A stretch of DNA of 64,000 nucleotides from the NCBI GenBank assembly GCA_964036045.1, contig OZ038379.1, positions 38,750,001-38,814,000 of the forward strand. The letters are read 5' to 3'. Source of the DNA: Eutreptiella sp. 'Long Island Sound 2002'. Its lineage: Eukaryota; Protista; Euglenida. Positions 3,345 through 60,857 of this stretch are shown here, one piece after another; position 1 is the stretch's first letter, and every line of letters begins with the position of its first letter. A program made the translations under genes and the position numbers. The notes beneath the pieces were generated by a model, which was not told the origin of the DNA, did not search any database, and worked only from the letters and a program-made list of their open reading frames with translations.

Positions 3345-6160
3345 GCAGTTCTGGATTGTAGCAGAAAGAATTGTTCCAACTGAAAAGAGCCCCTCAATAC
3401 TTTAAGACAAATTTCCCCACCACTGCACGGCACAAGGCAGCCGCCTCCAGTACCCGCAAGGGTGGAAAGTGCACGTAAGGCCATTCCTCTGCCGAACCTT
3501 ATGCCGAAACCCCACAAGGTGTGAAGCCGGAAAGCGTGGCGTTGGGATCGCTGAGCGTAGTGCAAACACACACGACTTTGGTCGAGCGGGACAAATCAAA
3601 GCTACTCGTCCGTACCTTTTCCGAGATTAGTGGTGTGCGCAATGACAAACTCATCGACATGCCCTTTAAGAGCATGGCCATCAAGTATGAACGGACAGTG
3701 AAGGCTGCTGACCAGTTGCGGTACATGATGACGGAGGAGCATGATGCTAATGAGGAGGCCCTTGCAAATTTGGGCAAGAATTGGCAACTCATCATTAGCC
3801 GGGAGCACGACGAGTACATGGGATGGATGCGACAAAAAATATGCCGTCCATGTGTCCACCGCGTTGCACGATGGCGCCAAATGTGCCCCTGCATGGCCGT
3901 TATACCGTCGCGCGCGTTGGGTGTCACAGTGTCCCGGGGGCGGGCACATCACCCGCATTCCGTCATACTGTTTGTAGACGTCGGATTATTATCCGCCATA
4001 CCAACCGCAGCCGTACCAACCTTAGTCGGCCTAAACCGAGCGCCCGATTTTCTAGCACGTGTCATAAACACCTTGTTTTTGTAAACCCATAAAAAAAGCG
4101 AGGATTTTGGACTTGGCGGCAGTAATTCGGGGGGGGGGGGGGTCCCGGACCCGTAAAAAATAGGGGAAATGTGTTTTTTGGGTGGGGTTGAGCACGGGGT
4201 GGCAGTGCAAGAATAGGCACATGAGAAGCCACAATGGCACGTTTTCTCAACCTTTTTGAGTATTTTTCCATTACCAGACCTGTTGCCCCATTACCAGCCT
4301 CACAAGCGATGGCCAATATTTGTCTGTGCTGTTCAGCAAGCAGCACCTTTGAGCAACATGTGGGTGGAAGAACACAGCATGCAGGGCACATAGGGTATGA
4401 CAATAGTACTGAACCGTATAGTCTCGGATCGTGTATAAGGTAGGCTAAAAACTGCAAAATGAAAAAAGAATCAGCTTTGGCTCATTTTTTTGGCCCAAGC
4501 GAATAAATACATCGCTTAAAAACTATACTCACATATAGTATTGCTAGCAGTCCTGACATGACCAATTGTCATCCTTTGCCTCCTCCTTGTGCTAGGCTTG
4601 TTTCTTCTCCCGCTCCTTATTCACACCTACGTCCTCTACCTCTAACTGTGACACCTCTTCACGTCTCACTTTGCCGGGTGTGGTCTTTTTTGGTGGTGTA
4701 AATTCCTCGTCCTCTGCTGGAATTAGGTCCCCATCATCGTCATCCTCATCCTAGGACTTGTGAACATCCATGCACACCGCACACCACTAAGCAAGCTGTT
4801 GCACATAAAGGTTGCCATTGGCACACCTAGCTTGGATTGCTTCGATGTAGTCTTTCAACTCTGCCTTCGGCCCGTGAACAACACTTCAACACAGACAAGT
4901 TTCGGCAGTGAAAAGGGAGACCAGGCAAACAACTGCAAGTTTCAATCCAGACCCGGTCACCAGGCACGTCAGAGTTCTCCCCGTGAGGCTGCTTGGGGCA
5001 GAGACCAAAACACTTCAACAAAAAACCAAGCACGCGAACCGTCATTGGCGACTTCACAACACCCTGATAAGCATTCAAGTAATTAGGCATCTTCACAGGG
5101 ACCTCTTCCGGAAACCCGACAACAGCTTGAATTTCTCTTCATTTATAGTAAGCATGTGTACTGCCAGAGTCAAACAGGCTAATCGTCGGCCAATTCCAAC
5201 CAACACAGAACTCACATCCCTCAGCTCTGTGTGAGTTGACTTGCTTTCCACCACAGGACCCACAATACAAATAGGATCCCTAGCCCGAAGCCGCCGGTGA
5301 AGCATTGGGCGCACGTAAAACTTTTGGTGCTGTTGTAACTAAATAAACATCTGTAGGACAACAACGGGCAATTTCAAGCACTTACCAAGCAAGTTTGATT
5401 CTCGGGAGGAGCCAAAGCTTATAAAGTTCGCAAACGATCAAAATATGCACAAGAGAAACATTAGCGTGACCCAAAACAAAGCACACCATTTGAAAGCAAC
5501 GGTTCGTCAAGCCCCCGGTAGTGCCCGCTTTACCATGTGGAGGAACTTCACTTGTGGTCCCTGTATCAATTCCCCATCGCGCGAAATATGTCCTTCAACG
5601 TGCATTTTGTGTGCAGCCTCGTCACTAGTCTCCAACTCAGACGCCAACACGGGTCTTGCTAGGATGCTCCGGAATTAAGCTGCTCCATTCTGCTCCTTCC
5701 CAAATCGGCGCTTTCTTGATTGGTTCGTAGGGTGGGTACTCGTCCTGGTGCTGCGGTGTCCATCTTCCGAGATGACATTTCACCGTTGCCGGTCCCAACC
5801 CTAGACACCTACGTTAAAACCAATAGGGTTAATTATAATTTTGAGTGTATGAAAGGGTGTAAAAATCAACCTGTCAAATATTAACACATTAACCCAATTT
5901 TGGCACATTTGCCCCGCTTTGCTTGTGCGCGTACCATGCCCATTTGAAGTGTTTGGGTGGTCAACGGGTGCCCAACGGGTTGCTACAGGGGTTGCATAGT
6001 CCTATAGGTGGTTATGTAGACCCAGACATCCCTCTCCGGTCCCCCCACTCACCCTACTCCCAACCTCCTTTTTCCCTTGCGTAGCTCTTGTTATGCCTTT
6101 CTCTCGTGACACCCTTCTCGAGTTTAATGTGACGCTCACGTGTGAATTGGGGCCAAGAGT

Positions 6161-7050
6161 TTGCGCAACTCTTTGGTCTCCCAACTCCTTGGTGAGTGGG
6201 TGGCCTCATCCCCTTTGGCCAAAGCACGTAGTACGAGGCCACCGAGGTTGCCCAAGTCACCGTCATCCGCAAAAAGCAACCGTCCTCTTCCGCGCACACG
6301 AATTGATTGGGTTACTTATGGACTTGAATGTCCCCAAGGCGGCTTTCAGCATGTGTCGGAGTTCATGAGCCGCCGGGGGACCACGTACACAGCCGCAACG
6401 GGCCTCCCATTCCCCCGCCCCATCCTTCACGTGACCGCTTCATGGACACATGGAAGGAGTTGGTCAAGCCGCTTGAGCTAGATCGACCCGTGTCCGTGGC
6501 GGATCCCCCCACAAGCGGCCGCTCTTGGCCGTTGCAATCATGGGCCCGCTACATCCAATCGCGTCCAGCCCTTGTGGACACCATTGATTGGAAGCAGCCA
6601 CTCACTTTCCTCCCCCACGGGAATGCCTACCCATGCACCAGTGCAAGTTGGACCCAACTTTCCATCGGCCTCCTCAACCACGGCGCACGGGGCCGACCAC
6701 CCGCCTACCTATGGGTGATTGGCATGGCCGTATGCGGGGACAAGGACATGGCCGCACTAGCGATAATATGGTTCCAAAACTCCCTGGTATACGGCCGTTT
6801 TTCTTTGGTTTTGGTTTTTGCGTTAGTTTCTCGAGGTTACTATTTAATATTTGGCATATATCAATAAGAGCTGAAAAATCAATCTAAGATGACCCTCCAA
6901 AAATTAATGCAAAAATTAATTCCCCTTTTTTTGTAGATTTTGCAGCACATTGATGACCACAAGGGGTTCTAGTGGGCATCACGCTACTTACCCAGTGTGC
7001 TAGCCATTTAGGGTGACCACCTACTTGTGCACCGCCCCATTGTCACCTCT
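6161..7050 (+). pseudogene. Frameshifted RAG1/CMC-fold DDE transposase remnant (paralog of 17123-19119)
   Basis: WKELVKPLELDRP...SWPLQSWARYIQSRPALV...LTFLPHGNAYP...WTQLSIGL aligns with WKELVPPVQLDNP...SWPFASWVTYILSRPGLV...LTFIVRGDAYP...WTQLTISL. First catalytic D is replaced by N. Phase-0 GT donor at 6787 sits at the same protein position as in A1. A GDH (second D) motif lies at 7011-7019. Confidence 0.8.
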
Positions 7051-7089
7051 ACCTCCCCCATAGTGTGCTCCACATACAAAATATACAGC

Positions 7090-9400
7090 AACAATGCACC
7101 TTTTCTTGTGTGGCATGGGAAGAAACACACAAGCACATGCGCACACACACACACACACACAATAATATTGGCACCCCCACACATTTGTCCCCTCCCACAC
7201 ACATCCTTCCTATCTCCTCCCTTTGTCCTCCCCCTCCCCTTGTGGTTAACGTTTGGGAGGGTATGCCCCTTTCTTTCTGCAGGACTTTTGGAGATGTAAG
7301 AAAAATATTTTGATCATGGGACCAATCAAGAAAGCTGGTAGGTGTGTGTGTCTAGGTGTGTGTGTCTCCGTAGTGGCCAGATTGTAGGCCGTAGATTGCC
7401 CCAAAGCTGATAAAGGGGCTAGTTCATGCTTTCTTTGCACTGCCAATCTCCCCCCCTTGCGATTGTGCTGTGTGTGGGTTGTGATGTGTGGGGTGTGATG
7501 TGTTGGGATGTGGTTTTTAGGGGTCCGGTGTGTGGGGGACCAGGGTGTTTGGAGTTGTGGTGCGTGGGGCTGTGATCTGTGGGGCTATGGTGTGTGGGAG
7601 AGTAGGTTCTTAGGATCTAGGTCAAACGGTCCTGTAACCCCCTAGAGCAACCCTCCCCCCCAACCAACCGAGTTGGGTGTGTTATAGCGTTGCGTGGTGT
7701 TCCCGTGGTATGTAACCCCCCCCCAAGGGCCCCCCAAAAGCCCCCCCCCCCCTCGCCCGCGTCCCCAAAATGTAGTGGCACAACAGTGATGCATGCGCCC
7801 TGAGGGGGTTTGCTTTGTGTTGTGGATGTTTTTATTCACGTTAATATTTGAAACGTGGGTTAATTTTTGTAGGTCAACATTAACAGATTAACGACATCAA
7901 CAATTAATATCTAATATATGAATTAATATTTGGCCCGATGATATTACCCTGCAAAAATTCATGCCAGGGGGCGAAAACGTAACTCTCGGTTTTTCGTGGG
8001 TTTTTCGCACATGCAACATGTGGAGGGGCGGCCAAACCACTGCACACCACACAGCCGCACACGCCACCGCCCTACATTCCACAACCCCGCACCCTACAGC
8101 CCCAAAGCCCACAACCCCAAGCACTACACCCCCAAACACCACGGCCTGGCACGCCACAGCTACACACCTCGCAGCCCAACATACCATAGCCCTTCACAGT
8201 TGTGGCCCACACCCCACAGGCTCGCCCCCTACAGCCCCATACACCATGGCCCCCCCACACCCCCACCCCACATCCCACAACCCCACACCACGCGGCTCCA
8301 CACCCCACAGCCCCACACCCCACAGGCAGAGGCACCACATCGCCAAACACCAGAGCCCAACACGCCACAGCCCCCTAGCCCGCTGCGCAAGACACCACAA
8401 GCCCACCCCCCCACTGCCCTACGCCCCAGAGCCCCACACCCCACAGCCCCACACACCACAGCCGCACACACCACAACCGCATACACCACAGCTCCACACA
8501 CCCCAGCTCTGTACACTGCATCACCACACCCACAACCCCACACATCCCAGTATGACACTGCAAAGGCCCACACACCACAGGCCGACACACCAAAGCCCCA
8601 CATTGCCCCAATTGTTTCAGGTGAACTTTTTGACCGCCACCATTAATGTTGGCAGGTTAATATTTAATTTTTAGACCGGTGTTCGAAACATTAAAATTAA
8701 CAGTTAATATTAACCTTCAAGAAACCAAAAAAATGTCACAAAAATTAATTGTGGCCCTCAGTCCCTCGTGCACTGTTTTTTGCTCCCATACAACCCATCA
8801 CAGTGCCGCAATGCACCCCCACAGCATCCCCACCAACACATGCAACAACCCCACACACCACAGCACCAAAAACCAAACCCACAGACCATGGCCCAGCACA
8901 CCGCATCATAGCCCCACACACCACAGACCTGGAGACCACATCCCCTCACACCACAGACCCACACACCACAGCCCCGGACGACACATCCCACACACCACAC
9001 TACCAAAGGGGGGGGGAGGGTTAACATTGCAAACAAAGCCTGAACTAGCCGCTTTATCTGCTTGGGGGCAATCTACACCCTACAACCCAGCCACAATGCA
9101 CATGTACACACCCACACAAGCCCCACACAAGCACACACACACACACACACCAAGACACACATACCTCCAAGCTTTTGTGATTGGTCTTGCCTGCAAAAAT
9201 GTTTTGACGAACATCTCCAAAAAACCTACATAAAGAAAGGGGCATACCCTCCCAAACCCAAACCCCAAGGGCAAGGGAAGAAAAGAAGAAGGATTAGGGA
9301 GGGATGTGCGGGGGGGGCTGCCAATATGTGTGTGTGTGTGTGTGTGTGCAGGAAAAGGGGGGGGGCATCCACTTTAGTAAGGCACAAGAACTATGCATGC
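7090..9400. repeat. Diverged inverted duplication (7090-7445 vs 9020-9400) plus CA/CCCCACA-rich low-complexity tracts
   Basis: GGGAGGGTATGCCCCTTTTCTTT at ~7255 vs AAAGAAAGGGGCATACCCTCCC at ~9231, and GTAGATTGCCCCAAAGC vs GCTTGGGGGCAATCTAC; (CA)n blocks in both arms. Confidence 0.75.
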
Positions 9401-10104
9401 CCCCTAGTATGTTTGGCTTGTTGTTGTGCATTTGTAGGGGAGGTTGATATTTGCGGCAGTGTATTAATTTTTCGCAGGTTAATATGAATGCTGGCGACTC
9501 ATTAATTTTTAATGTTTCAAATATTAAACGAAAAATTAAACTCAAAAATTGGAGCCGAGGACTCTTTTAATATTTTCCCCATGAAAGCAGGTGAGGACCC
9601 CCCCCAACCCCCGGGTGAAAATGGCACCCGATCCAGTAAGGCACCCCATTGGGGTAGAATTTCTCACGTCTAAGCCCCTCACCCCCCCTCCCCGAAAAAA
9701 GGTCAACTTTGGGTTAACGCATTAATTTTTGACACGAATATTAAACATATTGGGTTTAACATAGCTCTCTAGGGGCCAGGCGTCCCACCTTTGCCATTTC
9801 CTCATGCGTTCCTAGTATCACCACACGGGGGGGGGGGGGATTGCGACTGCACCAGACGTCTTCCAGACTGTAAGGGGAGTTGCGCACATACTTCTATTGG
9901 GATGCAGCAATGGGTTCTCAGGATGCATGAAGACCAGCTTCCAGTGCCTGTCACGCTTCCAGAGTCTCACGAGCTTTGCAGGGCCTGCAGCTGATGCGCA
10001 CTCGGATACCACATAGATGCAACTCTCCTTTGTGTGATCCCGGTACACTGCCGACGTGCACTTTAGGCCTATGATTGTCAGGTGTGAGAATTGCGGTCGG
10101 CGGG

Positions 10105-11245
10105 AATGAGCCATGGCTCATTTAAATTCTGAACGGTCGAAAAAGGGTCCAAAAATACCTTCCTTTTTGCTTTCAGCGTACGACCTCATCGCTACAGATA
10201 TTCGATTGTTAGTATGGTTGCCCAGTTGATATAGCGGCTTCCAGGTCCTTGAGACACTGTCATGTTAGGCACATAAGCCGCATAGCATAAGCTACAGAGC
10301 TCCACAGACCAGCGGGGTCTACTGTTTGGGGGGGAGGCATACCATGGTGACTTTTGCTTTGATGACGCCTGCCTTGCCAACTGCCATGTACACTACCTCA
10401 TGCGGGTCAATAGTATTGGGATCATCGAGTGGTCGTTGGATCTTGCTGATGCTGTGCTGACTAGCATTGTCCTCCCCTCTATGATCTCCCGGATATGCGG
10501 CCGACACTCTTTCTTCACCACTTAGCAACTCACTATCACCATCCATGAGGGTAGTGTCTCCTTCTTCTTCAAAGTATCCGCTGCCCACAATCGCATAGCC
10601 CGGGTTAGGTGGTGCTTTGCAATGACGAAAAGCTTGTTGTCTGCACATCAAGAAATTAGGGATTTGCAAAACAAACGAGCCAAAGCTCGTTCCGCCGCTG
10701 AAATGGCAAGCATGAACCCCCCTGGTGGCACACGTGTACAGCAGTGTTTAGCGGGGAACAATAGAGGGCATGTCGATACCCTGATCCATCTAGACATTGG
10801 CCTTCAGTGGCTTACGCGGGGGATTGGCCTGTAGGGACTCCAACCGTGCCTCAACATCCTCGTTGTCTATTTGGCGTGACTGTCTAAACTTGGCTGCCCG
10901 GTCCCATTCCAGCTTCAAAATGTGGATCTTCCGTCGCATTGGCTCACTGTACTTGTGTGTGTCCACGGCTTCCCATACGTGAGACACCTCGACCTTTTTG
11001 GATAACTGTTTGCCTACCGGGAGAGCCTGTGTAAGAGAACTCACCTATTTATCTTCCGTTTACTCCGGCTTAATACCAATGTCCGCTGCCGGGGGTGCCT
11101 CCTCGTTACTATCCCTCATGGGGGGTTAGTTGGATTGAGCCACAAAGAAGAAATCCACTACCGAACAGTATGAGGAAATGCGAAAATAGCAACAAAAGGG
11201 TACACCAAAGGTAGTCCTTCAAAAAAGAATAAGCCATGGCTCATT
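10105..11245. other. 1.1-kb segment bounded by two copies of an 18-bp palindrome
   Basis: AATGAGCCATGGCTCATT at 10105-10122 (perfect palindrome) and AATAAGCCATGGCTCATT at 11228-11245 (one mismatch). Confidence 0.6.
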
Positions 11246-11614
11246 CGCGGACGGATTAGTGATTATCACAGCTGACTGCTAACAATTGACGACCCAACCC
11301 TGCAACGTTCCTCCTCGAGCATAACATACTTACCAACCTCTGTCAAATTTGACGAGTGGACAAATTGTAGGTCCACACACACATCAACAGGCAACACATC
11401 ATCCCCAAGGTATATTGAGAGCCCCTGGTCCGAAGGGAGGGAGAGGGCCGTTCCCACCACCACCCGTCTGTTGTGGCTTGTTTTGCGATTGAGCTACAGC
11501 TCGTTGTTTAACCTTGGGTAGTACTTGAATAGGAACGGATTTGCGAAAGACCTTTATCACACGGGCACACAGCTATGCCCAATTTGGGGGGTATTTATAA
11601 AAATATGTATTAAA

Positions 11615-13579
11615 TTAACTCACACCATCTTCTGACAGCTTCAGTGGTCTGGTGAGAGTATGCAAGGCATTTGTTAGCATGTTGGTGTACATGGTACAGG
11701 ATAGGGGGGTACTAAGGGCCATAGGGTGGGCAAAATTTGTTGGCCATTTAACATTGCTAGCCACTGTCTTCTTGCGGTCCAAAATGACAGCTTGAACTGT
11801 ATCTGTCAACAAATGGCTCGCAACCTTAGGTACATTGCCATCAACATATTCATGCAAGCCTCGCTGAATGAGACTGCATGTAAATGATTCTCCACATAAC
11901 AAGCTGCTTTCAAAACCAGGAACAAATAACATGCACTGTCCAACGACTTGCATTGGGGATTGGGGCGCATGGTAGCAACAAGCCTTGCCAACAATACCTC
12001 ACAACTTTCTTGAGCATGACACAGCGCACGTAGGTTGTCATACCACTTATCCCACACGAGTAGGGCAGTTCCTAGTGTCCGTAGGTACTCAATGTTGTAC
12101 CGCAACTCAGACATCAGATGTGGCAGAGTTACATAGCAATAGCATAACACGTTGTGGCCAACGTGTCCCGAACAGGCACACCAACCGCACTCACAAAACT
12201 AGGTGCCCACTAAGTAATAGTGCCGGTGTGTATTCAAACAGGAGGGTATACACAACGTGTGCTTGACCCAATAGCCCACCGGCATTCAAGGATGTCAACA
12301 TATGGGGATGACACCTACCATGTAGCAACGCCAGCTTCTGCTGTATCTGGATCTTCTGCTTGGAGGCGGAAACAACCAAACACGCGAACATGCGCTCCTT
12401 AAAGATCAGCTTGGGGAATGCATACACCGGGACATCGGCTGCCTGAATACCATGTCTATATGCCACCATCGATGGGAAAAAAAGGCGGCTTGTGACAGTA
12501 AGGGTGCAATTATATGGGTGCCATATACCCTACACCGGGGGGTTCGACAAAGCTTGTGACCCACATTGTACCCATGAGATGAGACACTATATATCATCTT
12601 CATGATACTATATTGTGTCTTTTCATCGATGAGTATCGGGAGCACATGGGATGTGTGGTGCTGCATTTTAGACACAAGTAATACCAGTCCAAGCATACCT
12701 GACTCAGTTCCGGACTGAAGTTTTGAAAGCATGAAGGGATGCCGTGGGGTGTTGTACACTACCGTTCGCCGAACATCCAACAGACAACGAATGTGCTGGG
12801 GGGGTATCTCATCTTCTATAAGGTTTGACAGTGCTCTCATCAAGACCAATTGAGTGGTAGTCAACAACCTGCCCACCTAGGAAGTAGAAGCTTGTAGTGT
12901 GGGAAGGATTGGAAACCCCACAAAAACTCAATTGCCTTGCTAACATAAGCTACAGCAATTGCCGTACAATTGAGTGATGTATTTGACTTATGTGGGGTGG
13001 GGTGTAATTGGCGACGACGGAGATTATCAAACCATAAAACAAAGACAGCGCCTTTCATACAGGCCCAAAGAGCTGCGGCACAGCCCTGTGCCGTAGTTGC
13101 AAGAGAAGCTGCCCGCGGGGCACAAAAACCAGAGCGTGCAAGGTGGCGCCGAACGCTCCGAGTGGGAGCCACTTTCTCGTCGTCACAAAACAAGTCGGCA
13201 TGAGGGCGACAAAGTAACAACATCAGACGGTACAAATCATACGCCTCCTCAGTCGCGAGAACAAAACACCTAGTTGTGTGCTTGCCGCCGCGTAGCAACT
13301 GAAATTGCCTAAGAAACATCTTCAGTGTAGGGCGCGTACATGCCTTTAAACCAAGTGACAAAGCAAAGGAAAGAAACTCGGCCGACGGACCCCTAGAACT
13401 AAGAATATCTAGAAAATCATCCTTGGTCCTGTATGTGTTGCCAGCCAAGAAGGTGACGAAGGGCACTGCATTCATAATGTCCCCATAAGGCCATAGTTGA
13501 GCACCAGAGACACATAGAAGGGGGTTTCATTCGCACGTAGGTAAGCAAATGGAGAATAACAACGCGAAATTGCTGAAGA
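11615..13579 (-). pseudogene. Multi-frameshifted transposase-like gene (DN...DE...GxxH...E order, DUF6589-like by recollection); host of the 13580-27293 insertion
   Basis: Consecutive minus ORFs carry VLWFDNL, PILIDEKTQYSIMKMIY...RVYGTH and AQESCEVLLARL. The 5' part continues at 27294 onward and has an uninterrupted paralog at ~63000-63345. Confidence 0.45.
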
Positions 13580-13725
13580 CACATGGCGCTAGAACGCACA
13601 GCATAGAAAGTAAAAAAAGCGGGAAGAAGCTAGGCATTTTGTAGGGGATTTTTTGGAAAGTCTTAGCACTTGTGGTCACCAAATGGGACGCGTATCGCAC
13701 GGTACATTTCAGAAATCAGCAACAC

Positions 13726-14232: not shown

Positions 14233-16658
14233 CATGGCGTCCACATCCAACACCCGTTCCCCTGATTATGTACAGCCGTACGCGGATACTTCTTGGGTTG
14301 CGGTTGAGGTTCAGGGCTATCATGAGATGATCATGAAGAATCTGACCCTGCGGCACTTACTGTAGAGCCGTTAGACATGTACACATCATCATCCTCAAAA
14401 TCATCATTCATCGGACTGCTACTACTCCCGCCGTCACTGCTACAGATACTGCTGTTGGTGCTGTTGCTGCTACTACTGCTATTACTGCCTTTGGGAAACA
14501 CACATTGCTGCTCTATTTTGCTATCAACAATGGGGATGCGCAACAACGTGCAACGTGCCTCACATCACTCGGACCTTGAAAGGAGGTAGCAGTGTCCTCT
14601 ACCTCCGAAGCAGGAACCACAACAACGGAACCTGGGTTAGAATCCACCGGTTTGTGTTTTGGGCCCCACATCACATTTCCCCTTACCCTTTCCCTTGCCC
14701 TTGAGATCTTTACGCCGTGCGGCACAGGATTTGAATTTGGACCGGCTCTTCAAACCCACTGTAGGCCAACTGTGGACAGCTTCCAGCTCAAGAGGGACCC
14801 ATTGAGGTATACCACGCTTTCAGCCACAAATCCTGCGTACACAAACCACATCACTTCCGCGTTCTGCACTTGGAAAAGTCCATTCAACCGAATTGGTTGC
14901 CGGGTGCATATAAAAGCTGCAGCCGCCTGCTCCTTGACAAGTCATCAAGTGCCGTAACAGGCGCCGGAAGACTTTTTGCCACATGGCGTTGGCAGCAACC
15001 AAGCAAGCCTCCAAAAAAGGTTCTAATGGACAAGGGCCCAAATTTTGGCAGTAGGAATCTTCCTTTTCTTGCACAAAAACTTTTCATACCACTCACGCTT
15101 CAAACTTTCACTAATACTGGCATCCCGGCTAGTACTAGTCACGGGGGCATATCTTTTGGCCACGCGGTGATCCCGTTCCCCTGCCTCATCAGAATATAGC
15201 ATGGGCGTCCGCGGGTTAAACCAAGTGTGGGACCACCCATGCATATATAGGGTTGCCGTGCAACCTTCTTGCGCAAATTCCGGAATGATGTGCACAATAT
15301 ATGTGTACACCAAAGCCATGGCTTGCCATGCTGCAATTGCCAATGTGGCGCAACCGTAGCATAGGTCTACTATGGGGTGCAAGGCCAGAACAAGAGAACG
15401 GAAAGGCAATGGGAGGACCATGACCCCCGCCATTCTGCCCATCACAGTGTGGGCCTCTCGGCCCGTTAGGCGGATGCCTGCTTGGAACCTTCCTCGCACA
15501 AGGCGCAAGAGCTCCCTGCTATCAGAAGGCAAAGATCCAGGGTGGTATCTCCTAGCAACTTGAGGTATAACCTTCAACAACTCACGCTTGTACGGCCCGG
15601 GTACGGTCCGCCCAGTAAGACCAAGGAGTCTGGACTCTGCTCCTTTGGTGTTGTGTAATACTGGTTGTATAATATAAATTGTGCCAGGTTAGATACACCC
15701 TTGAACTTGTGGTAACCCTGCACCTCATTTAGACGCCCCCCCCTTGTGCAAAAAGAGTGTGGCAACCCCATGCTTTTTGACCGAGGGACATGCCACGCAC
15801 CCCCTTTGTAGACACTCTAACCACAAATGGTGGTGATCTGCAGTCAGGCAACCAAACTGTAGGTGCAGTGCTGTAGTGTACTCTGCACCACCATACTTCA
15901 TATGTTGCTGGAATTTACACAAAGGCACAGCTAGCAGGGCCTCGGCCCGTTTGGGTAGCCACTCCCCATCAACAACTTTGGGAAATTCCATCCACATTAT
16001 CATGCTGGTGCACCCGGGCACATGGCCAGACCTTGGGAACCAGTCTCCCGCAAAATTGATTGTATAAATCTTAGTGTTAACATTGAGACGCCCCGTGGGT
16101 TGGTATCCATCTGCAAACAGGCCCAAGTTAGGGTGGCTTGTTGGGTTGGGGGGTCCCGGCACCCTTGTACTGCTAGGGTACCGGACTTCTGCAGAAGTAG
16201 ATGGCACAATTCTGCCAATAACTTGCTGTTCCTCAGGGAGTAGTCCACTACCAGAAGATTTAGGAGCTGCTGCTGCCGCAATACCACCATAGGACACCCG
16301 GTAGTTGGTTGGAGGCGATCGAGGGTTCGCAGCACTGCTGCTGGCATAACATGCTCATGCCGCAAAAGCATGGTAGCTGGTGCCGGGGAACTGGACTGGC
16401 GGGGTCGGGTGACAAAGGGCCCATTGCGCGCCGCACAACCCGGACTTTGCGAGTGGGGGGCCGTGGCAGGTTGTCTAGCTCCTTGCTGTCCAAAGGGGTG
16501 GCCCCAGGGAAGTTCAAGATGAAAGCTGACACCATGAACTGGTTGGCATGGACAGGGCAGAGGTTGGCAAACGCCTCTAGTGTGGAAACGTCCCCATTGA
16601 CCCATGCAGCAAAATCGTCCACAATGTACTCATGGTGGAACATTGTGATTTTGCAATA
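14231..16658 (-). pseudogene. Family B transposase exon 2, frameshifted
   Basis: Motifs LGLFADGY (D), LTADHHHLWLECLQRGCVAC (D + CxxC), LYMHGWSH (HxxxH) and LYSDEAGER (E) are spread over several frames. Colinear with 56624-59117. Confidence 0.85.
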
Positions 16659-16693
16659 CTGTGATACGAAGCACGGATGGCGGACATTTTTCT

Positions 16694-16896
16694 AATGCCC
16701 CGACCAGTAGCTGTTACCAGAACCTTATTTTCGTCCAATTGCTCACAGTAGCTCAAACATCTGGTCCCTCCCTGTGTGCTCGACCATCCGCCCCCTAACA
16801 AAGGCCCACTGTTTCAGATTTCTCCCAACCAAGCATTTATGTAATGCCCCAACCAATAGCTTTCACGAGAATGTTTTTTTGGTCAATTTGCTAACA
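16694..16896. repeat. Left remnant of the ~149-bp tandem array, split by the A1 insertion
   Basis: Same unit as 22336-23323 (TGTGCTCGAC...CCGCCCCCTAACAAAGGCCCACTGTTTCAG). Confidence 0.9.
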
Positions 16897-17122
16897 CCCT
16901 TGGTACACGCTAGAGAACCTAATCTCGTTCTAGCCTAGAACGCTCTAGCTAGAACGTTCTAGGCTAGATTAGATCAATAGTAGAACGATACAATGTCTAT
17001 CAACATATCCCAATTTCTTCATTGTTCCGTGCGTGCGTGCGTGCATGCTTGCTTGCTATTGTCGGTAGTGCATTGTTCCATGCTTCCTTCTTTCCCGCTT
17101 AGATATTGCACATTTCGTTGCA

Positions 17123-19119
17123 ATGAAACGCCCCGCCACTACCCCCCTTGCTCCCTCCTCACCCGGGAAGGATACTTCCCTCTTGTCCAAGGCACTACGG
17201 GGGTTGAGTGGGGCCTCAACCCTCAAGGATGAGCGGGTGCGCCATTACTTGGCCCCATGGGCGCTGTCATGCCCCCTAGCACGGCGGCAATTGAACAACG
17301 CCGTCCAACATGTGAACTCCGCCACTTCTACCCAAACCACGGGTGAGGCATGCAAGGCCGCCGTTGAGGCATACGCCGCCTCCCTACTTCCCCCCACCGC
17401 CATGTGTGAACTAGTGCTCAACACGAGGGCCCCCAAGTCGTCGTGGAGGACCCTCTCGGAGCTCTACACGCTCCGTAAGTTGGAGTATCACCGCACCGTC
17501 CCTAGTGGCCCCTACTCCCGGCCAATTTGTACCGAGCGGGCTTTCCAAGCCCGTTGGAAGGAGTTGGTCCCCCCGGTGCAATTGGACAACCCCGTTGCCA
17601 CGGCGTTGCCCAAGGCCACCGGGATCTCATGGCCCTTCGCCTCATGGGTCACATACATCCTCTCCCGGCCGGGCTTGGTGCGGTCAATCAACCGCACCTT
17701 CCCGTTGACGTTCATCGTCCGGGGAGATGCCTACCCCGTGCCCGGGGGCAATTGGACCCAACTCACCATCTCCTTGGCCAACTTCGAGCGCTTGGCCCGC
17801 TCCCCAGCGGGCCTTTGGGTGTTGAGCATGGCCAATTGCGATGACAAGGCCATGGAGACCCTTGCGACGTTGTGGAAGAGCAATTGGAAGGTAGTCCTCT
17901 CACCTAGTGCCTTTTACTCGTTCTAGTTTTGATCTAGTCGGCCTAAAACACCGCTCACTAGACGCTAGATTGGAATAGACTAGAACGAAATTAACCACCC
18001 CCCATGTCTCGTGTTTAGGTGCTTCAAGAGATCATCGACACGGGGCTGGTCCAATGGGGGGCCTCCAAGGAGGAGGCAAAGGTGATCCCTGGGGGGGATC
18101 AACCGTGGCCGCGACGGGTGATCGGGGTGTCCACATGCCCCCAAGTGGGCTCCATGTTCAATGAGGGCATATGGAATACCCCAACGAAGACTTGGGAGGG
18201 TAGTGCTAACCCCTGGACGATGGACGGTGATGAGGCCAACTACACGGCCTTCCTCCTTGGGACGCCATCCTTGCAAGCCGCCGGCTGCAGTACGCAGCCC
18301 ATTTTGAAATTGCCACGTGCCTGGGTCGTCTTGTGCATTTTGCACTTGACAATGGCCATGGGCCGCTTGTTGGGTGACTTTCCCGATCGGGAGGCTAGGT
18401 TGGTCACCCCTGCGCTCCGTCGAGACCTGCAAGTTCTCCTGTCGGAGAGGCGTGCAGGTTGGAGCGTTTATGGGTCAGCATCCCCAGATGGGGAGGTGAC
18501 GGCCAATTTTTTTGACGCATGGCCGGATATTGCTAAGTGCCTCCGCATTAGGCCAAGCACGGCCAAGTACAAGGCCATTGCGAACATGTCGGACCTGCTG
18601 CAGGCCCTCTATTGTACATATCAGGGCCCTAACCCTTTGAATTCTGCTGCTGTTGCCCGCGATTTCCGGCGACACTGCACTGCTGGAACAGCATCATGGT
18701 ATCTACTAAGCCTTGAGCAGGATGTAGATACCACGTTGCAGAACATTAAGCCTTTTGGCCTAGCTATGTTCTCCGGTGACATTTCGGAAAGCATTAACCG
18801 CTTTCTGAAACATGGTCACAACGAGCACATCAACCGGGGGGGGGGGGGGGGCTGTCGGGTGGAGGGGGTGGACGAGGTGTCGGGTCCTCAATTGTCGGCC
18901 ATCCACAGGGAGGCCAATGTGCAAGCGCAGTGCATGACATGGTTGTTTGCGTACTTGGACGTGTCGTGGGTTGTGCATGGGGGGCCACGGTCGCAAGTGC
19001 CATGCTCAGGCAGGGATGCCATGGAGGTAAGGAGGGGCCCGGGTCACATGCAGGCTTCCCGTAACCAGAATTTTGCAATCCAAGATGGCTACGCGGGAGC
19101 AGTTGGACGAGCTCGTTAG
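17123..19119 (+). CDS. Spliced DDE transposase of RAG1/Transib/CMC fold (exons 17123-17890 and 18019-19026 or 19119)
   Basis: GT-AG intron 17891-18018 joins the ORFs in frame. Motifs: FIVRGDAY (D, codon 17726), PGGDQPW (D, 18097), LCILHLTM (like RAG1 DALHCDI) and LAMFSGDISESINRFLK (E, 18787; like RAG1 IGAWASEGNESGNKLFR). Confidence 0.85.
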
Positions 19120-20990
19120 GCAGGTATATTTCGTGCTGTACGTTCTAGCGGTGATCTAGGGAATCGTTCTAGTCTTGATCTAGGCAGCACGATCGGCCGT
19201 TAGACTGTCGCTAGAACGCCGCTAGAACATTTGCCTAGAATGCCGCTAGAACGCTCCTGTGCTACACAACGCAGCGACCCAAGCGCTGATTGCGCAAATA
19301 CTGGAGGCGGAGAGGCGTGCAGCGGAGGAGCCGAAGGCCTAGCAGGCCCCGCACCCCAAAGCCCCCCTCGCCAAGGCCAAGCCCAGACCCAAGCCCCAAC
19401 CCCAAGCCCATCGTCCACAGTCGCCACCCCCTCCCCCATTGGTAGCCCGGAAGGGGGCGGCGGCGTTGGAGGAACCGGCAGAGGTGGAGGTGGCGCGGGG
19501 AGAGCTCAAAGGGTTCTTGGATTCCCGCGCCGCCTCTAGGGCGGCCAACACCCGGGCAGAGACGAAACTCTCGGCCTGGGAGGTAAAATTACGGAGCCTC
19601 GTGGAGGATGGAGCGGAGGAGGAAAGGGTGGAGTGGGCGGAGGCCAACCTTCGCAAGGCGAAGGCGAAGGTGACGGAGAAGGCGGCGGCGGTGGAGGGGT
19701 TCGAGCGGGCGGTGAGGCATTGCGAGAGGCAGTTGGCGGCGGTGGTGGCGAGGGTGAAGGACGAGGAGGTGGACGAGGTGGTGGAGGTGGACGTGCAGGG
19801 CGAGATGGAGGAGGAGGCGAGCGTGAAGGATGAGGAGGAGGAGACCAAGGTGGTGGAGGCGGCGCCGGCGGGGGGGGGGGACGAGCGACTGGCTCAGGGG
19901 GTTGATGGGGTCGAGGGCTGCGGGGGCCCTCCAGGACCTGCCATGGGACCCGGCAGTCCTGGCTGGCACCCACCCCCCAAACCCGGACACCCCCCTCGTC
20001 GTCGCCCCGGAGAGTCCGGTATGGACTCTCCGGTTTTTGTTGGTGCGGGTGCACCACCGGCTGTTGGGGGCGGGGCTGGGTATGGGTGGACAGGGGGGGG
20101 GGGGTTTGTCCACCTGGACGAGCCCCTGCGCCTGGGGTGGTCGAGGGGTCGTGGGGGTGGCAACGTGAGTTGCCAGGGCAGGGGAACAAGGGGTGGGGGG
20201 GAGCCCCCCCCCCCCCCCCCCGAAAGGCGGGTGAAGATGTTTGAGTTGGCGCAAACCAACATCTTCAGCCCCGAGCGGAAAAAGGGGGGGGCAACCCACT
20301 GGCGATTCGTCGCCCACTGCTGGCAGGGGCGGAACTTGAGGGGGGTTGAGTGGGTGGGGAAGGCCTGGGTGTGGACGCCGACCTGGTCGGCGCTGCTGGA
20401 CATCAGGGGTTTCAACCCCGAGGCGGCGAACCGGGGGGTGTATGCCGGGGTGGTGCACGGCATCGCCGGCCGGCCCAAGCCCAAGCCCAAGCCCGCCGCA
20501 GCCCCCGCTGGCGGCCCCCGGCAGCCGCACCCCCCCAACGCCGCGGACGCCTTCGCCAAGGCACTGGGGGCCATCCCCCCCGCCCTGGACCACCAAGGCA
20601 CGGTATGTCAATTGCGTTCTAGCGTTGATCTAGCAAACCGTTCTGGCGCTGTTCTAGCCACTGCCGTACCGCCGCCGCTAGAACATCGCTAGAACGTCGC
20701 TAGAACAGTTGCCTAGAACGCCGCTAGAACGCTCCTGCATTTTGCTCTTCACGTTGTCAACGTGCAGACGTGTGGAGGCGACCCCCGCGGGGTGCGCGTG
20801 GAGTGGCGCGATGGTGGAGGGCGCACGCGCCTCATGGGGGTCACCGAGTTGAGCTGGATCTTGGGGACAAACCCCAATTTGGCTCTCTCGGTGTTGGAGG
20901 GTTTGGGTAGGTGGGAAGCGGGCAGGAGTGCGGAGGGCATGGACCCGCAGCGCAAGGGCTGGGCCAGGTTGCAGGACTGGGGGAAGGATG

Positions 20991-21023
<33 letters not shown>

Positions 21024-21738
21024 CCAGCACCAGCAGCGAGGGGAAGACACCCCCCCCAAGGCCCCCAACCTCCCCCCCCAATGCCCCCAAGAAAAAACCC
21101 CGCCACTTCGAGAGTAGCGACAAAGAAGAGCCCCCCCCCCCCCCCCCCCCAAGCCCAAGCCCAAGGCCAAGCCGCACGCCAAGGGCAAGGGCAAAGCCAC
21201 CCCCCCCCCCAAACCCTAGCCCCCCGCTATGCAAGAAAGGGGCCGGGACCCCTATGGGAATGTGCCGGGTGTGGGGGACACCCGGTATGTCCCTTGGGCG
21301 GAGGGGGGCAATGGGGGGACCGTCAGCCAAGTGACGGTGTTGGGGGATTGGGAAGAGGAGTTTGACCCGCAAGAGTGGTGGGTGGTGTCGCAGGGGTCCA
21401 ATGGGGAGGGGGAGGGGGGGAAGAAGGGGAAGAAGGGGAAGAAGAGGAAGCGGGAGAAAGAGGGGGGCACCTTCCGGGTGGCAGGGGACCTCCTCTTCCT
21501 CACCCGGGAGGAGGCGGAGGCCCAGCTCCGGGAGGCCTTGGAGCCCGGGGACCACGGGGACGACGGGGATGACGAGGGGGACGAGGGTGGTGACAAGGGG
21601 GAGGGGGGTGACAAGGGGGGTGAGGCGGGGGGTGACAAGGGGGGTGAGAAGGAAGGGGACACGGGGGGTGGGGGTGAGAAGGGGGGTGCCGGGAGCAAGG
21701 ATGAGCCCCGGCAACCCCCCACCACGCAGGAGGGGTAA
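19085..21738 (+). CDS. Spliced low-complexity extension or second ORF of A1 (coiled-coil/acidic, Pro-rich, poly-Ser, Lys-rich, GGD/E repeats)
   Basis: ORFs 19439-20692, 20762-21334 and 21229-21738. GT-AG intron 20603-20767 joins the first two in frame. One in-frame TAG near 19337 and frame changes inside poly-G/C runs. Confidence 0.5.
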
Positions 21739-21779
21739 CATGCGTGTCGCGACTCGCGAATGGGGGCCGGGGGGGGCAG

Positions 21780-21905
21780 GGGGGCTAATTGGGCTAACCG
21801 GGCTAATCGGGCTAACCCACCACCATGTGATCCGGCGCCGGCCCGCCAAGTGACCTTCCAAGTGACCTATGGGGTGCGGTGGGGGGCTAACCGGGCTAAC
21901 CGGGG
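21780..21905. repeat. 9-bp GGGCTAAYY micro-array in the A1 3' region
   Basis: GGGCTAATT-GGGCTAACC-GGGCTAATC-GGGCTAACC, repeated again at ~21884. Confidence 0.7.
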
Positions 21906-22335
21906 GGTGGGGGGGGGGGGGGGGACCCAGCGCTCTGTGAGTCGGGTCCAGCATCGGGACCCTGTGATTGGCCACGGCTGGCCATGGTAGCCGGGGCAGC
22001 TTCTCTTTGAGGAGTGGCGGAGCATTCATATATATCGTTCTAGCGGCGTTCTGGCGAACCGTTCTAGCGGCGTTCTAGCGGCGTTCTAGAATGCTCGCTA
22101 GAACGTCGCTAGAACGCCACTAGAACGAAAAATTTTTGGACTCCAAAATCAGGTGAAAACAGTGAAATTGTGAAAAAGAAAGTATGGGCCCCCCAGTATG
22201 GATAGGGGGGTCCAGGTTGGACACCTCAATCCCCCCCCTGCGGGGGGGGGGGGTATCCCCCTCTTTTTTTCGTTCTAACCTCTCTAGCCTGTTCTAGGCT
22301 AGAACGAGATTGGGTATTCTAGCGTGTACCAAGGG

Positions 22336-23323
22336 CAATAGCTCACAGATCTAGTCTCTCCAAGTGTGCTCGACTACCCGCCACCTAACACAGGTCCACT
22401 GTTTCAGATTCCTCCCAACCAAGCATTTCTGTAATGCCCCGACTAGTAGCCTTCACCAAAATGATTTTTTGGTCGAATTGCTCACAATGCCTCAGAGATC
22501 TGGTCGCTCCAAGTGTGCTCGACTACCCGCCCCCTAACAAAGGCCAGCTGTTTCCGAGTCCTCCAAACCAAGTATTTCTGTAATACTCCGACGAGTAGGT
22601 TTCACCAGAATGTTTTTTTGGTCGATTTTGCTAACAATAGCTTTGACATCTGGTCGCTCCAAGTGTGCTCGACTACCCGCCCCCTAACAAAGGCCGACTG
22701 TTTAAGATTCCTCCCAACCAAGCATTTCTGTAATGCCCCGAGCAATAGCTTTCATGAAAATGTTTTTTTTGGTCAATTTGCTCACAATAGCTCAGAGATG
22801 TCGTCCATCCAAGTGTGCTCGACTATCTGCCTCCTAACAAAGGCCCACTGTTTCAGATTCCTCCCACCAAAGCATTTATGTAATGCCCCGACCAGTAGCC
22901 TTCACTAGAATGTTTTTTTGGTTGATTTGCTCACACTGGGACAGAGATGTGGTCGCTCCAAGTGTGCTCAACTATCCGCCACCCCCAAAAGGGCCCACTA
23001 TTTCAGATTTTTCCCAACCAAGCATTTTTGTAATGCCCCGATCACTAGCCTTCACTAGAATGTTCTTTTGGTTGATTTGCTCATAGTGGCTCAGAGATCT
23101 TGTCACTCCAAGTGTTCTCGACTATCCGCCCCCGAAAAAGGGCCCATTGTTTCAGATTTTCCCCCACCAAGCATTTTTGCCATGCCCCGACCAGTAGCTT
23201 TCACCCAAATGTTTTTTTGGTCGATTTGCTCACAGTGGGTTTCACCACAATGTCTTTTTGGGCGATTTTCTCACAATGGCTCGGAGATCTGGTCCCTCCA
23301 AGTGTGCTCGACTATCCGCCCCC
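22336..23323. repeat. Tandem array of 149-150-bp units (~6.6 units), within the predicted family B intron
   Basis: CCAAGTGT(G/T)CTC recurs at 22360, 22509, 22659, 22809, 22958, 23108 and 23298. Confidence 0.95.
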
Positions 23324-59142: not shown

Positions 59143-60857
59143 GTAGGCCATTGTTTTGCTTGGTTTCAAAGGAACCATGTATGGAAAGCCCCAACCAGTA
59201 CCTTTCACTAGAAGCTTGAATTGCCAGGATTGCTCCAACCAGTTTGGAGATCCAAGGGTCCAAAGTGTGCTCGACTATCCACCCCCTCCCTCTGCACCAC
59301 TGTTTTGCTTGGTCTCAAAGGAACCATGTATGGAAAGCCCCAACCAGTACCTTTCACCACAAGCTTGAATTGCCAGGATTGCTCCAACCAGTTTGGAGAT
59401 CCAAGGGTCCAAAGTGTGCTCGACTATCCGCCCCCTCCCTCTGCGCCACTGTTTTGCTTGGTCTCACAGGAACCATGTATGGAAAGCCCCAACCAGTACC
59501 TTTCACTAGAAGCTTGAATTGCCAGGATTGCTCCAACCAGTTTCGAGATCCAAGGGTCCAAAGTGTGCTCGACTATCCGCCCCCTCACTTTGCGCCACTG
59601 TTTTGCTTGGTTTCAAAGGAACCATGTATGGAAAGCCCCAACCAGTACCTTTCACTAGAAGCTTGAATTGCCACGATTGCTCCAACCAGTTTGGAGATCC
59701 AAGGGTCCAAAGTGTGCTCGACTATCCACCCCCTCCCTCTGCACCACTGGTTTGCTTGGTCTCAAAGGAACCATGTATGGAACGCCCCAACCAGTACCTT
59801 TCACCACAAGCTTGAATTGCCAGGATTGCTCCAACCAGTTTGGAGATCCAAGGGTCCAAAGTGTGCTCGACTATCCACCCCCTCCCTCTGCGCCACTATT
59901 TTGCTTGGTCTCAAAGGAACCATGTATGGAAAGCCCCAACCAGTACCTTTCACCACAAGCTTGAATTGCCAGGATTGCTCCAACCAGTTTGGAGATCCAA
60001 GGGTCCAAAGTGTGCTCGACTATCCGCCCCCTCCCTCTGCGCCACTGTTTTGCTTGGTCTCAGAGGAACCATGTATGGAAAGCCCCAACCAGTACCTTTC
60101 ACCAGAAGCTTGAATTGCCAGGATTGCTCCAACCAGTTTGGAGATCCAAGGGTCCAAAGTGTGCTCGACTATCCACCCCCTCCCTCTGCACCAGTGGTTT
60201 GCTTGGTCTCAAAGGAACCATGTATGGAAAGCCTCAACCAGTACCTTTCACCACAAGCTTGAATTGCCAGGATTGCTCCAACCAGTTTGGAGATCCAAGG
60301 GTCCAAAGTGTGCTCGACTATCCGCCCCCTCCCTCTGCGCCACTGTTTTGCTTGGTTTCAAAGGAACCATGTATGGAAAGCCCCAACCAGTACCTTTCAC
60401 CCGAAGCTTGAATTGCCAGGATTGCCCGAACCAGTTTGGAGATCCAAGGGTCCAAAGTGTGCTCGACTATCCGCCCCCTCACTCTGCACCACTGTTTTGC
60501 TTGGTTCCAAAGGAACCATGTATGGAACGCCCCAACCAGTACCTTTCACCACAAGCTTGAATTGCCAGGATTGCTCCAACCAGTTTCGAGATCCAAGGGT
60601 CCAAAGTGTGCTCGACTATCGGCCCCCTCCCTCTGCGCCACTGTTTTGCTTGGTCTCAAAGGAACCATGTATGGAAAGCCCCAACCAGTACCTTTCACCA
60701 GAACCTTGAATTGCCAGGATTGCTCCAACCAGTTTCGAGATCCAAGGGTCCAAAGTGTGCTCGACTATCCGCCCCCTCCCTCTGCGCCACTGTTTTGCTT
60801 GGTTTCAAAGGAACCATGTATGGAAAGCCCCAACCAGTACCTTTCACCAGAACCTTC
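59143..60857. repeat. 149-bp tandem satellite, ~11.5 highly similar units, inside the predicted intron
   Basis: CCAAGGGTCC at 59252, 59401, 59550 and onward. Shares cores (GTGTGCTCGACTATCCGCCCCCT, CCACTGTTT, CCAGTA(C/G)CTTTCACCAGAA) with the 22.3-23.3 kb array. Confidence 0.97.

Follow-up and report, generated by a model that had tools for sequence, protein, structure and literature searches.

In CACTA transposons the terminal inverted repeats (TIRs) are conserved, while the subterminal repeats, which are bound by a second protein, diverge and form stem-loops (PMC2613891). Here we describe A1, a 5439-bp cut-and-paste element at positions 16897-22335 of a 64,000-nucleotide stretch of Eutreptiella sp. 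'Long Island Sound 2002' DNA (contig OZ038379.1, 38,750,001 to 38,814,000; the whole stretch is hereafter called the window), in which the word repeated beside the ends, GTTCTAG or its complement CTAGAAC, is also arrayed within every predicted intron of the transposase gene. Like the CACTA elements En/Spm, Tam1 and Tgm, A1 carries a short word in direct and inverted orientation beside both TIRs that is capable of forming stem-loops. As in CACTA, the outer TIR is conserved and the word is family-specific, and the CACTA word is believed to evolve together with a second DNA-binding function that the element encodes (PMC2613891). Unlike CACTA elements, whose arrays have been described within a few hundred bp of the ends, A1 has arrays also in every transposase intron, 1.0-1.5 kb apart; in addition, its TIR starts with CCC and it has no Pfam domain of the CACTA/Mirage/Chapaev (CMC) group. 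Subterminal arrays themselves are already known, and the new feature is their placement in every transposase intron. Literature searches aimed at them turned up no account of a transposon whose introns hold arrays of its own end word, and no description of these RAG1/Transib-like elements in Euglena.

The nearest case is provided by the internal inverted repeats of Tol2 where, as in A1, a hairpin-forming inverted repeat lies in an internal non-coding part of an autonomous DNA transposon. The Tol2 repeats are one 300-bp pair derived from a foreign MITE (miniature inverted-repeat transposable element) called Angel; the lamprey relative lacks them, and they bear no relation to the Tol2 ends. In A1, unlike Tol2, three introns bear the word of the element's own ends, and deeply divergent families retain the layout. 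A1 also resembles introners and MITE-derived introns, known from Micromonas and dinoflagellates and proposed for the nonconventional introns of euglenids, in that the intron is built of transposon-type inverted repeats (PMC11282704, PMC12501133). Introners, on the other hand, are mobile and multi-copy, reside in host genes, are flanked by target site duplications (TSDs) and supply a splice site, whereas the A1 arrays lie in the transposon's own gene, at conserved positions, and have no cleavable TIR or TSD. Multi-site subterminal binding by multimeric transposases is established for Hermes (PMC10368747) and for the inverted repeat/direct repeat ends of Sleeping Beauty (PMC5224488). In these systems and in Mutator-like elements with multiple TIRs (PMC3310237), more than one binding site aids or regulates the transposition complex, and by analogy the A1 arrays may be bound in a similar way. 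Their sites lie in or beside the ends or are extra whole TIRs, and none is described as lying in transposase introns.

Both ends of A1 carry the 18-nucleotide (nt) TIR CCCTTGGTACACGCTAGA as an exact inverted pair, a sequence absent from the rest of the window, and, at 85%, the inverted repeat reaches 59 nt. The sequence ..gctaaCAatagc.. of intact 150-bp satellite monomers becomes ..gctaaCA[element]CAatagc.. at the site with A1, so the target duplication is 2 bp. The features of the element, in window coordinates, are as follows.

16895-16896, no strand: left TSD copy, CA, from intact satellite monomers compared with the filled site.
16897-16955, no strand: 5' TIR (18 nt exact, 59 nt at 85%), which passes into the cluster of subterminal motifs; motif copies at 16927-16986.
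17123-17890, plus strand: exon 1, the N-terminal part of the transposase, 256 codons, ending in phase 0; an open reading frame (ORF) with tblastn conservation to residues 251-256 in all relatives.
17891-18018, plus strand: intron 1, 128 nt, GTAGTC..TTTAG, position conserved in loci L001-L010; array at 17919-17987, bounded by CGTTCTAG and CTAGAACG.
18019-19123, plus strand: exon 2, 1105 nt, donor phase 1, nonsense TAG at 19117-19119.
19124-19274, plus strand: intron 2, 151 nt, GTATAT..CGCAG, from frame continuity in A1, L003 and L004; array at 19141-19253, four forward then four reverse copies with 11/13/11-bp spacing.
19275-20602, plus strand: exon 3, with a long low-complexity tail, ending in phase 0, nonsense TAG at 19341-19343.
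20603-20767, plus strand: intron 3, 165 nt, GTATGT..GTGCAG, fold z -7.3; array at 20615-20731, four forward then five reverse copies.
20768-21738, plus strand: exon 4, the C-terminal tail, with a broken frame (two overlapping ORFs).
22036-22127, no strand: 3' palindromic block of five forward copies followed by three to four reverse ones, 3' of the stop codon, fold z -9.7.
22272-22335, no strand: 3' subterminal motif copies (22272-22316) and 3' TIR.
22336-22337, no strand: right TSD copy, CA, from the same comparison.

On both strands of the window GTTCTAG occurred 32 times against 3.98 expected, a count that none of 100 shuffles reached. All 27 exact copies within A1 lay in 976 bp of non-coding sequence: four in the 5' subterminal region (first 226 bp), two, five and seven in introns 1, 2 and 3, seven in the 3' block (counted over 22030-22135) and two in the 3' subterminal region (last 200 bp), with none in the 4172 bp of exons. 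When one mismatch was allowed, 40 of the 44 A1 copies fell in these 976 bp of array regions and four in the remaining 4463 bp. The longer form CGTTCTAGNNNTGATCTAG was found exactly four times in the window, only within the three A1 introns, with 0.00 expected. An earlier note on this DNA had described the motif as nearly confined to the predicted introns and the 3' subterminal block, which agrees with these counts, and the coordinates that it gave for the TIRs, the three blocks and the 3' block proved correct. We also ran the comparison of intron and exon density that the note had proposed; A1 word density was 126 per kb over all three introns and 0.8 per kb in exons, so that the motif is not equally frequent in exons.

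In the three introns and the 3' block, forward (GTTCTAG) copies always came before reverse (CTAGAAC) ones, as the note had also seen, and this order created inverted arms of 43-45 nt at 74-80% and of 30 nt at 93%. When 40 A1 copies were aligned on the core, the information content was 1.15-2.0 bits across the 8-nt (C/T)GTTCTAG and 0.04-0.5 bits in the spacers, the values at the seven searched core positions being inflated by the selection of copies and that at position -1 being unaffected. The start-to-start spacing of copies was 11, 13 and 11 bp in every A1 array, and 11-13 bp was found again in two relatives, L002 and L007. RNA folding compared with shuffles gave z scores of -4.1 for intron 2, -7.3 for intron 3 and -9.7 for the 3' block, but -1.3 for intron 1 and -1.1 to -3.8 for most relatives' introns, against -1.0 to -3.1 for exon controls. 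As fold strength varies so widely, what is kept is not a strong stem but the copies with their orientation and spacing. The arrays begin 14-30 nt inside the donor and stop 22-37 nt before the acceptor. An Rfam search of the window returned no matches.

The three A1 blocks are best described as conventional GT-AG introns of one long transposase gene, splicing being predicted from borders, phases and conservation. A search for sequencing runs listed 13 holders in seven studies, none of them recorded as RNA. All three have GT..AG borders, GTA-type donors (GTAGTC, GTATAT and GTATGT) and a pyrimidine-rich stretch before the acceptor, and their last eight bases are GTGTTTAG, CAACGCAG and ACGTGCAG. 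There are stops inside the blocks, the intron phases are 0, 1 and 0, and the frame is recovered once the blocks are deleted. In A1, and in L003 and L004, two further copies on the same assembly, the reading of exon 2 is led by the two bases that follow block 2 into the single long open frame of exon 3, and in L003 and L004 this passage is free of the A1-specific stops; exon 4 of A1 opens in the frame left by exon 3, and block 3 contains an in-frame stop. Among database proteins, all 100 exon 2 matches and the best 150 of 321 exon 1 matches were ORF pieces from genomic or metagenomic contigs, and one of them reads through a 159-nt in-frame intron.

Two further observations concern the layout of the gene. 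An ATG-started mini-exon lies just before intron 2 (19085-19123 of the window, L001 2329-2394, L002 2013-2041); its frame is that of the next exon in L001 and L002, suggesting a two-gene layout, while in A1, L003 and L004 the transposase frame itself crosses intron 2, giving one long gene. L003 lacks 658 bp (about 20223-20880 in A1 coordinates), from late in exon 3 across intron 3 to early in exon 4, and the left edge of this deletion adjoins a poly-C run, not an array.

We compared A1 with relatives on contigs at 27-45% protein identity, some from the same assembly and some from unrelated metagenomes (a metagenome scan gave two loci); L012 and L013, which are nested or recombinant loci, were excluded. 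L012 (6580-8560) has an A2-like 5' end and exon 1 (58% to A1), then an A1-like intron 1 and exon 2 (89.5%), and then an inverted A1 5' end, as in a nested or recombinant copy. In tblastn alignments of all the relatives the exon 1 match ends at residues 251-256 and the exon 2 match starts at residue 1 or 2, with a non-coding gap of about 110-310 nt between them. Because these match edges coincide across the relatives, intron 1 is taken as old and fixed in position. Intron 1 of each relative contains several copies of a short family-specific word, forward first and then reverse, the word being CGTTCAAA in L001, CCTGCAAA in L002, GTTCC-type in L005, TTCTAG in L006, CTGCATAA in L007, AATTGAAC in L008, TTCGAACG in L009 and CATATG in L010; in L008 the copies are interleaved as palindromes. 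The second introns of L001 and L002 follow the same forward-then-reverse pattern. L008 (element at 6669-12627) and L009 have word clusters at the 5' end, at three or four internal sites spaced about 1-1.5 kb, and at the 3' end. The outermost TIR CCCTTGGTAC is common to A1 and L005 despite their different words, and the TIRs of the relatives start with CCCTTGG or CCCTAG. The window also contains a sister element, A2 (5799-9774), whose ends bear AT-rich TTAAT/TTAAC-type words, as do internal blocks near 7840-7935, 8630-8760 and 9455-9545; this copy is heavily disrupted by CA-rich repeats.

The word in the introns follows the word at the ends. From the first 150 bp of each element we took the 6-mers that occurred most often and scored every family's intron 1 for them, using the six families with a 5' end on the contig. 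The true pairing of ends and introns gave the highest total among all 720 permutations, with a clear match between intron 1 and its own subterminal word in four families (A1, L001, L008 and L009) and a weak one in a fifth (L005). The densities of each family's own word were as follows.

A1: 55 per kb in intron 1, 0.0 per kb in exons.
L001: 70 per kb in intron 1, 3.0 per kb in exons.
L008: 34 per kb in intron 1, 0.6 per kb in exons.
L009: 28 per kb in intron 1, 4.0 per kb in exons.
L005: 22 per kb in intron 1, 8.2 per kb in exons.
A2: 0 per kb in intron 1, 0.0 per kb in exons.

When all introns of L001 were taken together, its own word reached 78 per kb against 2.1 per kb in exons. The array layout has outlasted many replacements of the word, in step with the ends.

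The earlier note had placed A1 among the CMC elements, a label that Pfam does not support; the partial fold match is to Transib/RAG1. When all exon ORFs were scanned against Pfam, nothing beyond noise came up at E values up to 1, and a profile search of PDB sequences gave no match. When exon 2 was modeled alone (mean predicted local distance difference test score 54.7), the confident part of the model (residues ~100-254) matched HzTransib, BbRAGL from amphioxus and RAG1 at Z 7.9-9.7 over 142-159 residues, compared with Z 5.5 for the next unrelated chain; the matched region is helical and partial, leaving a RAG1/Transib-type fold as a candidate. The alignment stops at residue 254, just before E257 of exon 2, which is nearly invariant, as is D27, and exon 1 holds an RGD(A/G)YP stretch. 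The short target duplication (2-bp CA) and the subterminal motifs in both orientations would fit CMC. Profiles and ends do not support CMC: no Tnp2 or Transposase_21-like profile was hit, and the TIR is CCC-type, not CACTA/CACTG. Transib has a 5-bp duplication and a CACNRTG heptamer; the 2-bp duplication and CCC-type TIR of A1 therefore fit neither Transib nor CACTA.

We regard it as an even call that the introns serve as internal binding arrays for a protein of the element itself and co-evolve with the ends, a judgment drawn from sequence comparison. The earlier note had suggested that the introns hide arrays of transposase-binding sites. The part that stands is that the intron word is the element's own end word in four families and weakly in a fifth, with a conserved core and spacing and free spacers; the binding is a prediction from these patterns. 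The (C/T)GTTCTAG word would most likely be the recognition site of an element-encoded sequence-specific DNA-binding domain, comparable to TnpA on the CACTA subterminal repeats, and each A1 intron would be maintained at the DNA level as an internal array of it, introns being the sole spots in a compact 5.4-kb element where arrays would not constrain the protein code. There would be six such platforms along A1, namely the two ends, the three introns 1.0-1.5 kb apart and the 3' block. An oligomerising binding protein on these platforms would fold the element and unite the two cleavable ends; alternatively, it would throttle the element's own transcription. As binding specificity drifted in a lineage, the arrays at the ends and in the introns would change together. 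We infer that a role in uniting the ends or in self-limiting transcription is to be favored. The fuller proposal, that spliceosomal introns have been selected as DNA docking arrays (a transpositional enhancer or a self-throttle) co-evolving with the ends in an old RAG1/Transib-fold group of euglenid-like protists, is held more tentatively, at somewhat less than an even chance.

If the arrays are bound, the introns would be cis-acting DNA for the element, which would explain why they are kept at fixed positions and would suggest a way for a long autonomous element to unite distant ends. Such use of introns by a mobile element would also be new, and the many families, each with its own word, would form a natural matched series of proteins and words for studying the co-evolution of end recognition. 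The arrays are relevant as well to the debate on transposon-derived, hairpin-shaped introns of euglenids, to which they are superficially similar, but their borders here are conventional.

Several points weigh against internal binding arrays maintained by selection. No DNA-binding domain was recognized by Pfam in the A1 exon ORFs. The match between end and intron in L005 was weak (three hits in the 6-mer test), and intron 1 of A2 showed zero own-word signal in that test, which captures the AT-rich word of A2 poorly. Since families of the same genome may have inherited one layout, they do not test the idea with full independence. Over 64 nt, spacers included, the 3' arm of intron 2 is 89% identical to that of intron 3, implying that arrays were copied or converted between sites; through such copying, covariation of ends and introns could arise even if the intron copies are not under selection. 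Moreover, introns and exons of A1, L003 and L004 decay evenly, as expected of dead copies, and comparison within the family thus carries no information on selection either way.

The main rival is accordingly neutral concerted evolution, in which a word newly arisen at the ends could spread to the introns by conversion. The arrays would then be functionless relics, that is, subterminal fold-back fragments of ancient introner- or MITE-like origin that within-element gene conversion or duplication has kept similar to the ends. This is an unlikely reading but the strongest of the alternatives. It draws on the paralogy of the arrays, spacers included, since to the likeness of introns 2 and 3 can be added the 72-78% identity of the 5' arms to the 3' block. 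It also has a precedent in the foreign MITE Angel, which forms the internal inverted repeats of Tol2 (10.64898/2026.01.12.699174), and in the MITE-derived introns known in several protists and proposed for euglenids (PMC11282704). However, intron 1 has stayed at one codon across 27-45% identity while its word turned over with the ends, and the core and spacing are conserved but the spacer sequence is not. Conversion would need to reach three introns repeatedly in each lineage. Nor do the arrays look like insertions: an exact search of the window found no outer-TIR copy in the A1 array regions, no target duplication was present at the array borders (the dinucleotides outside CGTTCTAG and CTAGAACG are unrelated), and a small sample of the same assembly (133,526 bp) contained no word cluster beyond the A1-family elements. 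The suggestion in the earlier note that the introns arose by introner-like self-insertion of end fragments is not supported as a recent event, given the fixed codon down to 27% identity and the lack of an outer TIR, a 2-bp duplication and, in that sample, a solo array. An introner or MITE-derived intron with TIR and TSD at its borders is likewise not supported, as the arrays start 14-30 nt inside the donor and have neither outer TIRs nor matching dinucleotides.

Two rivals act at the level of RNA, and both are weakened because fold strength is variable and the intron borders are conventional. The first, which we consider improbable, is that dicing of the intron hairpins yields small RNAs matching the element ends, by which the family is silenced or limits itself. 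Folding far above shuffles is indeed seen in introns 2 and 3 and in the 3' block, targeting would require a match to the ends, and Ac killer 1, an inverted-repeat allele giving transposon-homologous small RNAs, is known to silence its family (PMC13635294). Yet the copies are kept where hairpins are weak, as in A1 intron 1 and most families, and there is little reason for an element to retain a self-silencing trigger in three introns over deep time. The second, slightly more improbable still, is that the hairpin is needed for removal of the intron, as in the nonconventional and intermediate introns of euglenids; the noncanonical splicing code of Euglena includes inverted repeats at the ends of the intron (PMC12501133; PMC11282704). 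The A1 introns instead have GT..AG borders, GTA-type donors and pyrimidine-rich acceptors, and none of the three shows the nonconventional code of CAG at +4..+6 and CTG at -8..-6. Pairing in them starts 14-30 nt from the donor and ends 22-37 nt before the acceptor, the folding scores are near background in many relatives, and a stem needs no tandem copies of the element-end word. The earlier note had raised this hairpin requirement too and had asked for RNA folding; the intron scores of -1.1 to -7.3, taken with the borders, speak against it.

Finally, it is very improbable that the blocks are never removed and that the 'exons' are separate short genes or decayed pieces with intergenic repeats between them; all the database proteins listed are ORF pieces from genomic contigs and A1 itself is broken, but exon 2 lacks a conserved start codon and opens immediately behind the AG in all families, the exon edges are conserved to the residue with phases 0, 1 and 0, the long frame crosses intron 2 in three copies, and D27 and E257 would fall into a different 'gene' from RGD(A/G)YP.

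A1 is a dead copy. Its two nonsense TAG codons, at 19117-19119 and 19341-19343, are copy-specific, with GAG at these places in L003 and L004, and the last exon is frame-broken into two overlapping ORFs. Long G or C homopolymer runs occur in the coding exons at 18838-18851, 20207-20222 and 21129-21150; these could be slippage-prone or weak points of the assembly, and the frame break of the last exon is near one of them.

Some surroundings of the relatives may be mentioned. CCCTAA telomere-like repeats (L001 40-70) directly adjoin the 5' end of the L001 element. Genes for piggyBac-type transposases (PF13843) lie in the flanks of L003 (1-266) and L005 (2394-3425), both from the same assembly. In L007 (1-1350) a bacterial-looking recombinase-type ORF is joined to a fragment of transposon exon 1; this is a short metagenome contig and probably a chimeric assembly.

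The host site of A1 is a 150-bp satellite, with six copies to the right (22336-23238) and partial monomers to the left (16600-16896), and the monomer seems to be present again near 59200-59650, within a second transposon family of the window, B. In family B the end word is found once per end and internal or intron arrays are absent, so that intron arrays are not a general habit of the transposons of this genome. The B end word, AGCATAGAA, occurs exactly once at each B end (56259 and 61683) and additionally as an inverted pair at 13600 and 27265, which may mark another B-type element of about 13.7 kb enclosing A1.

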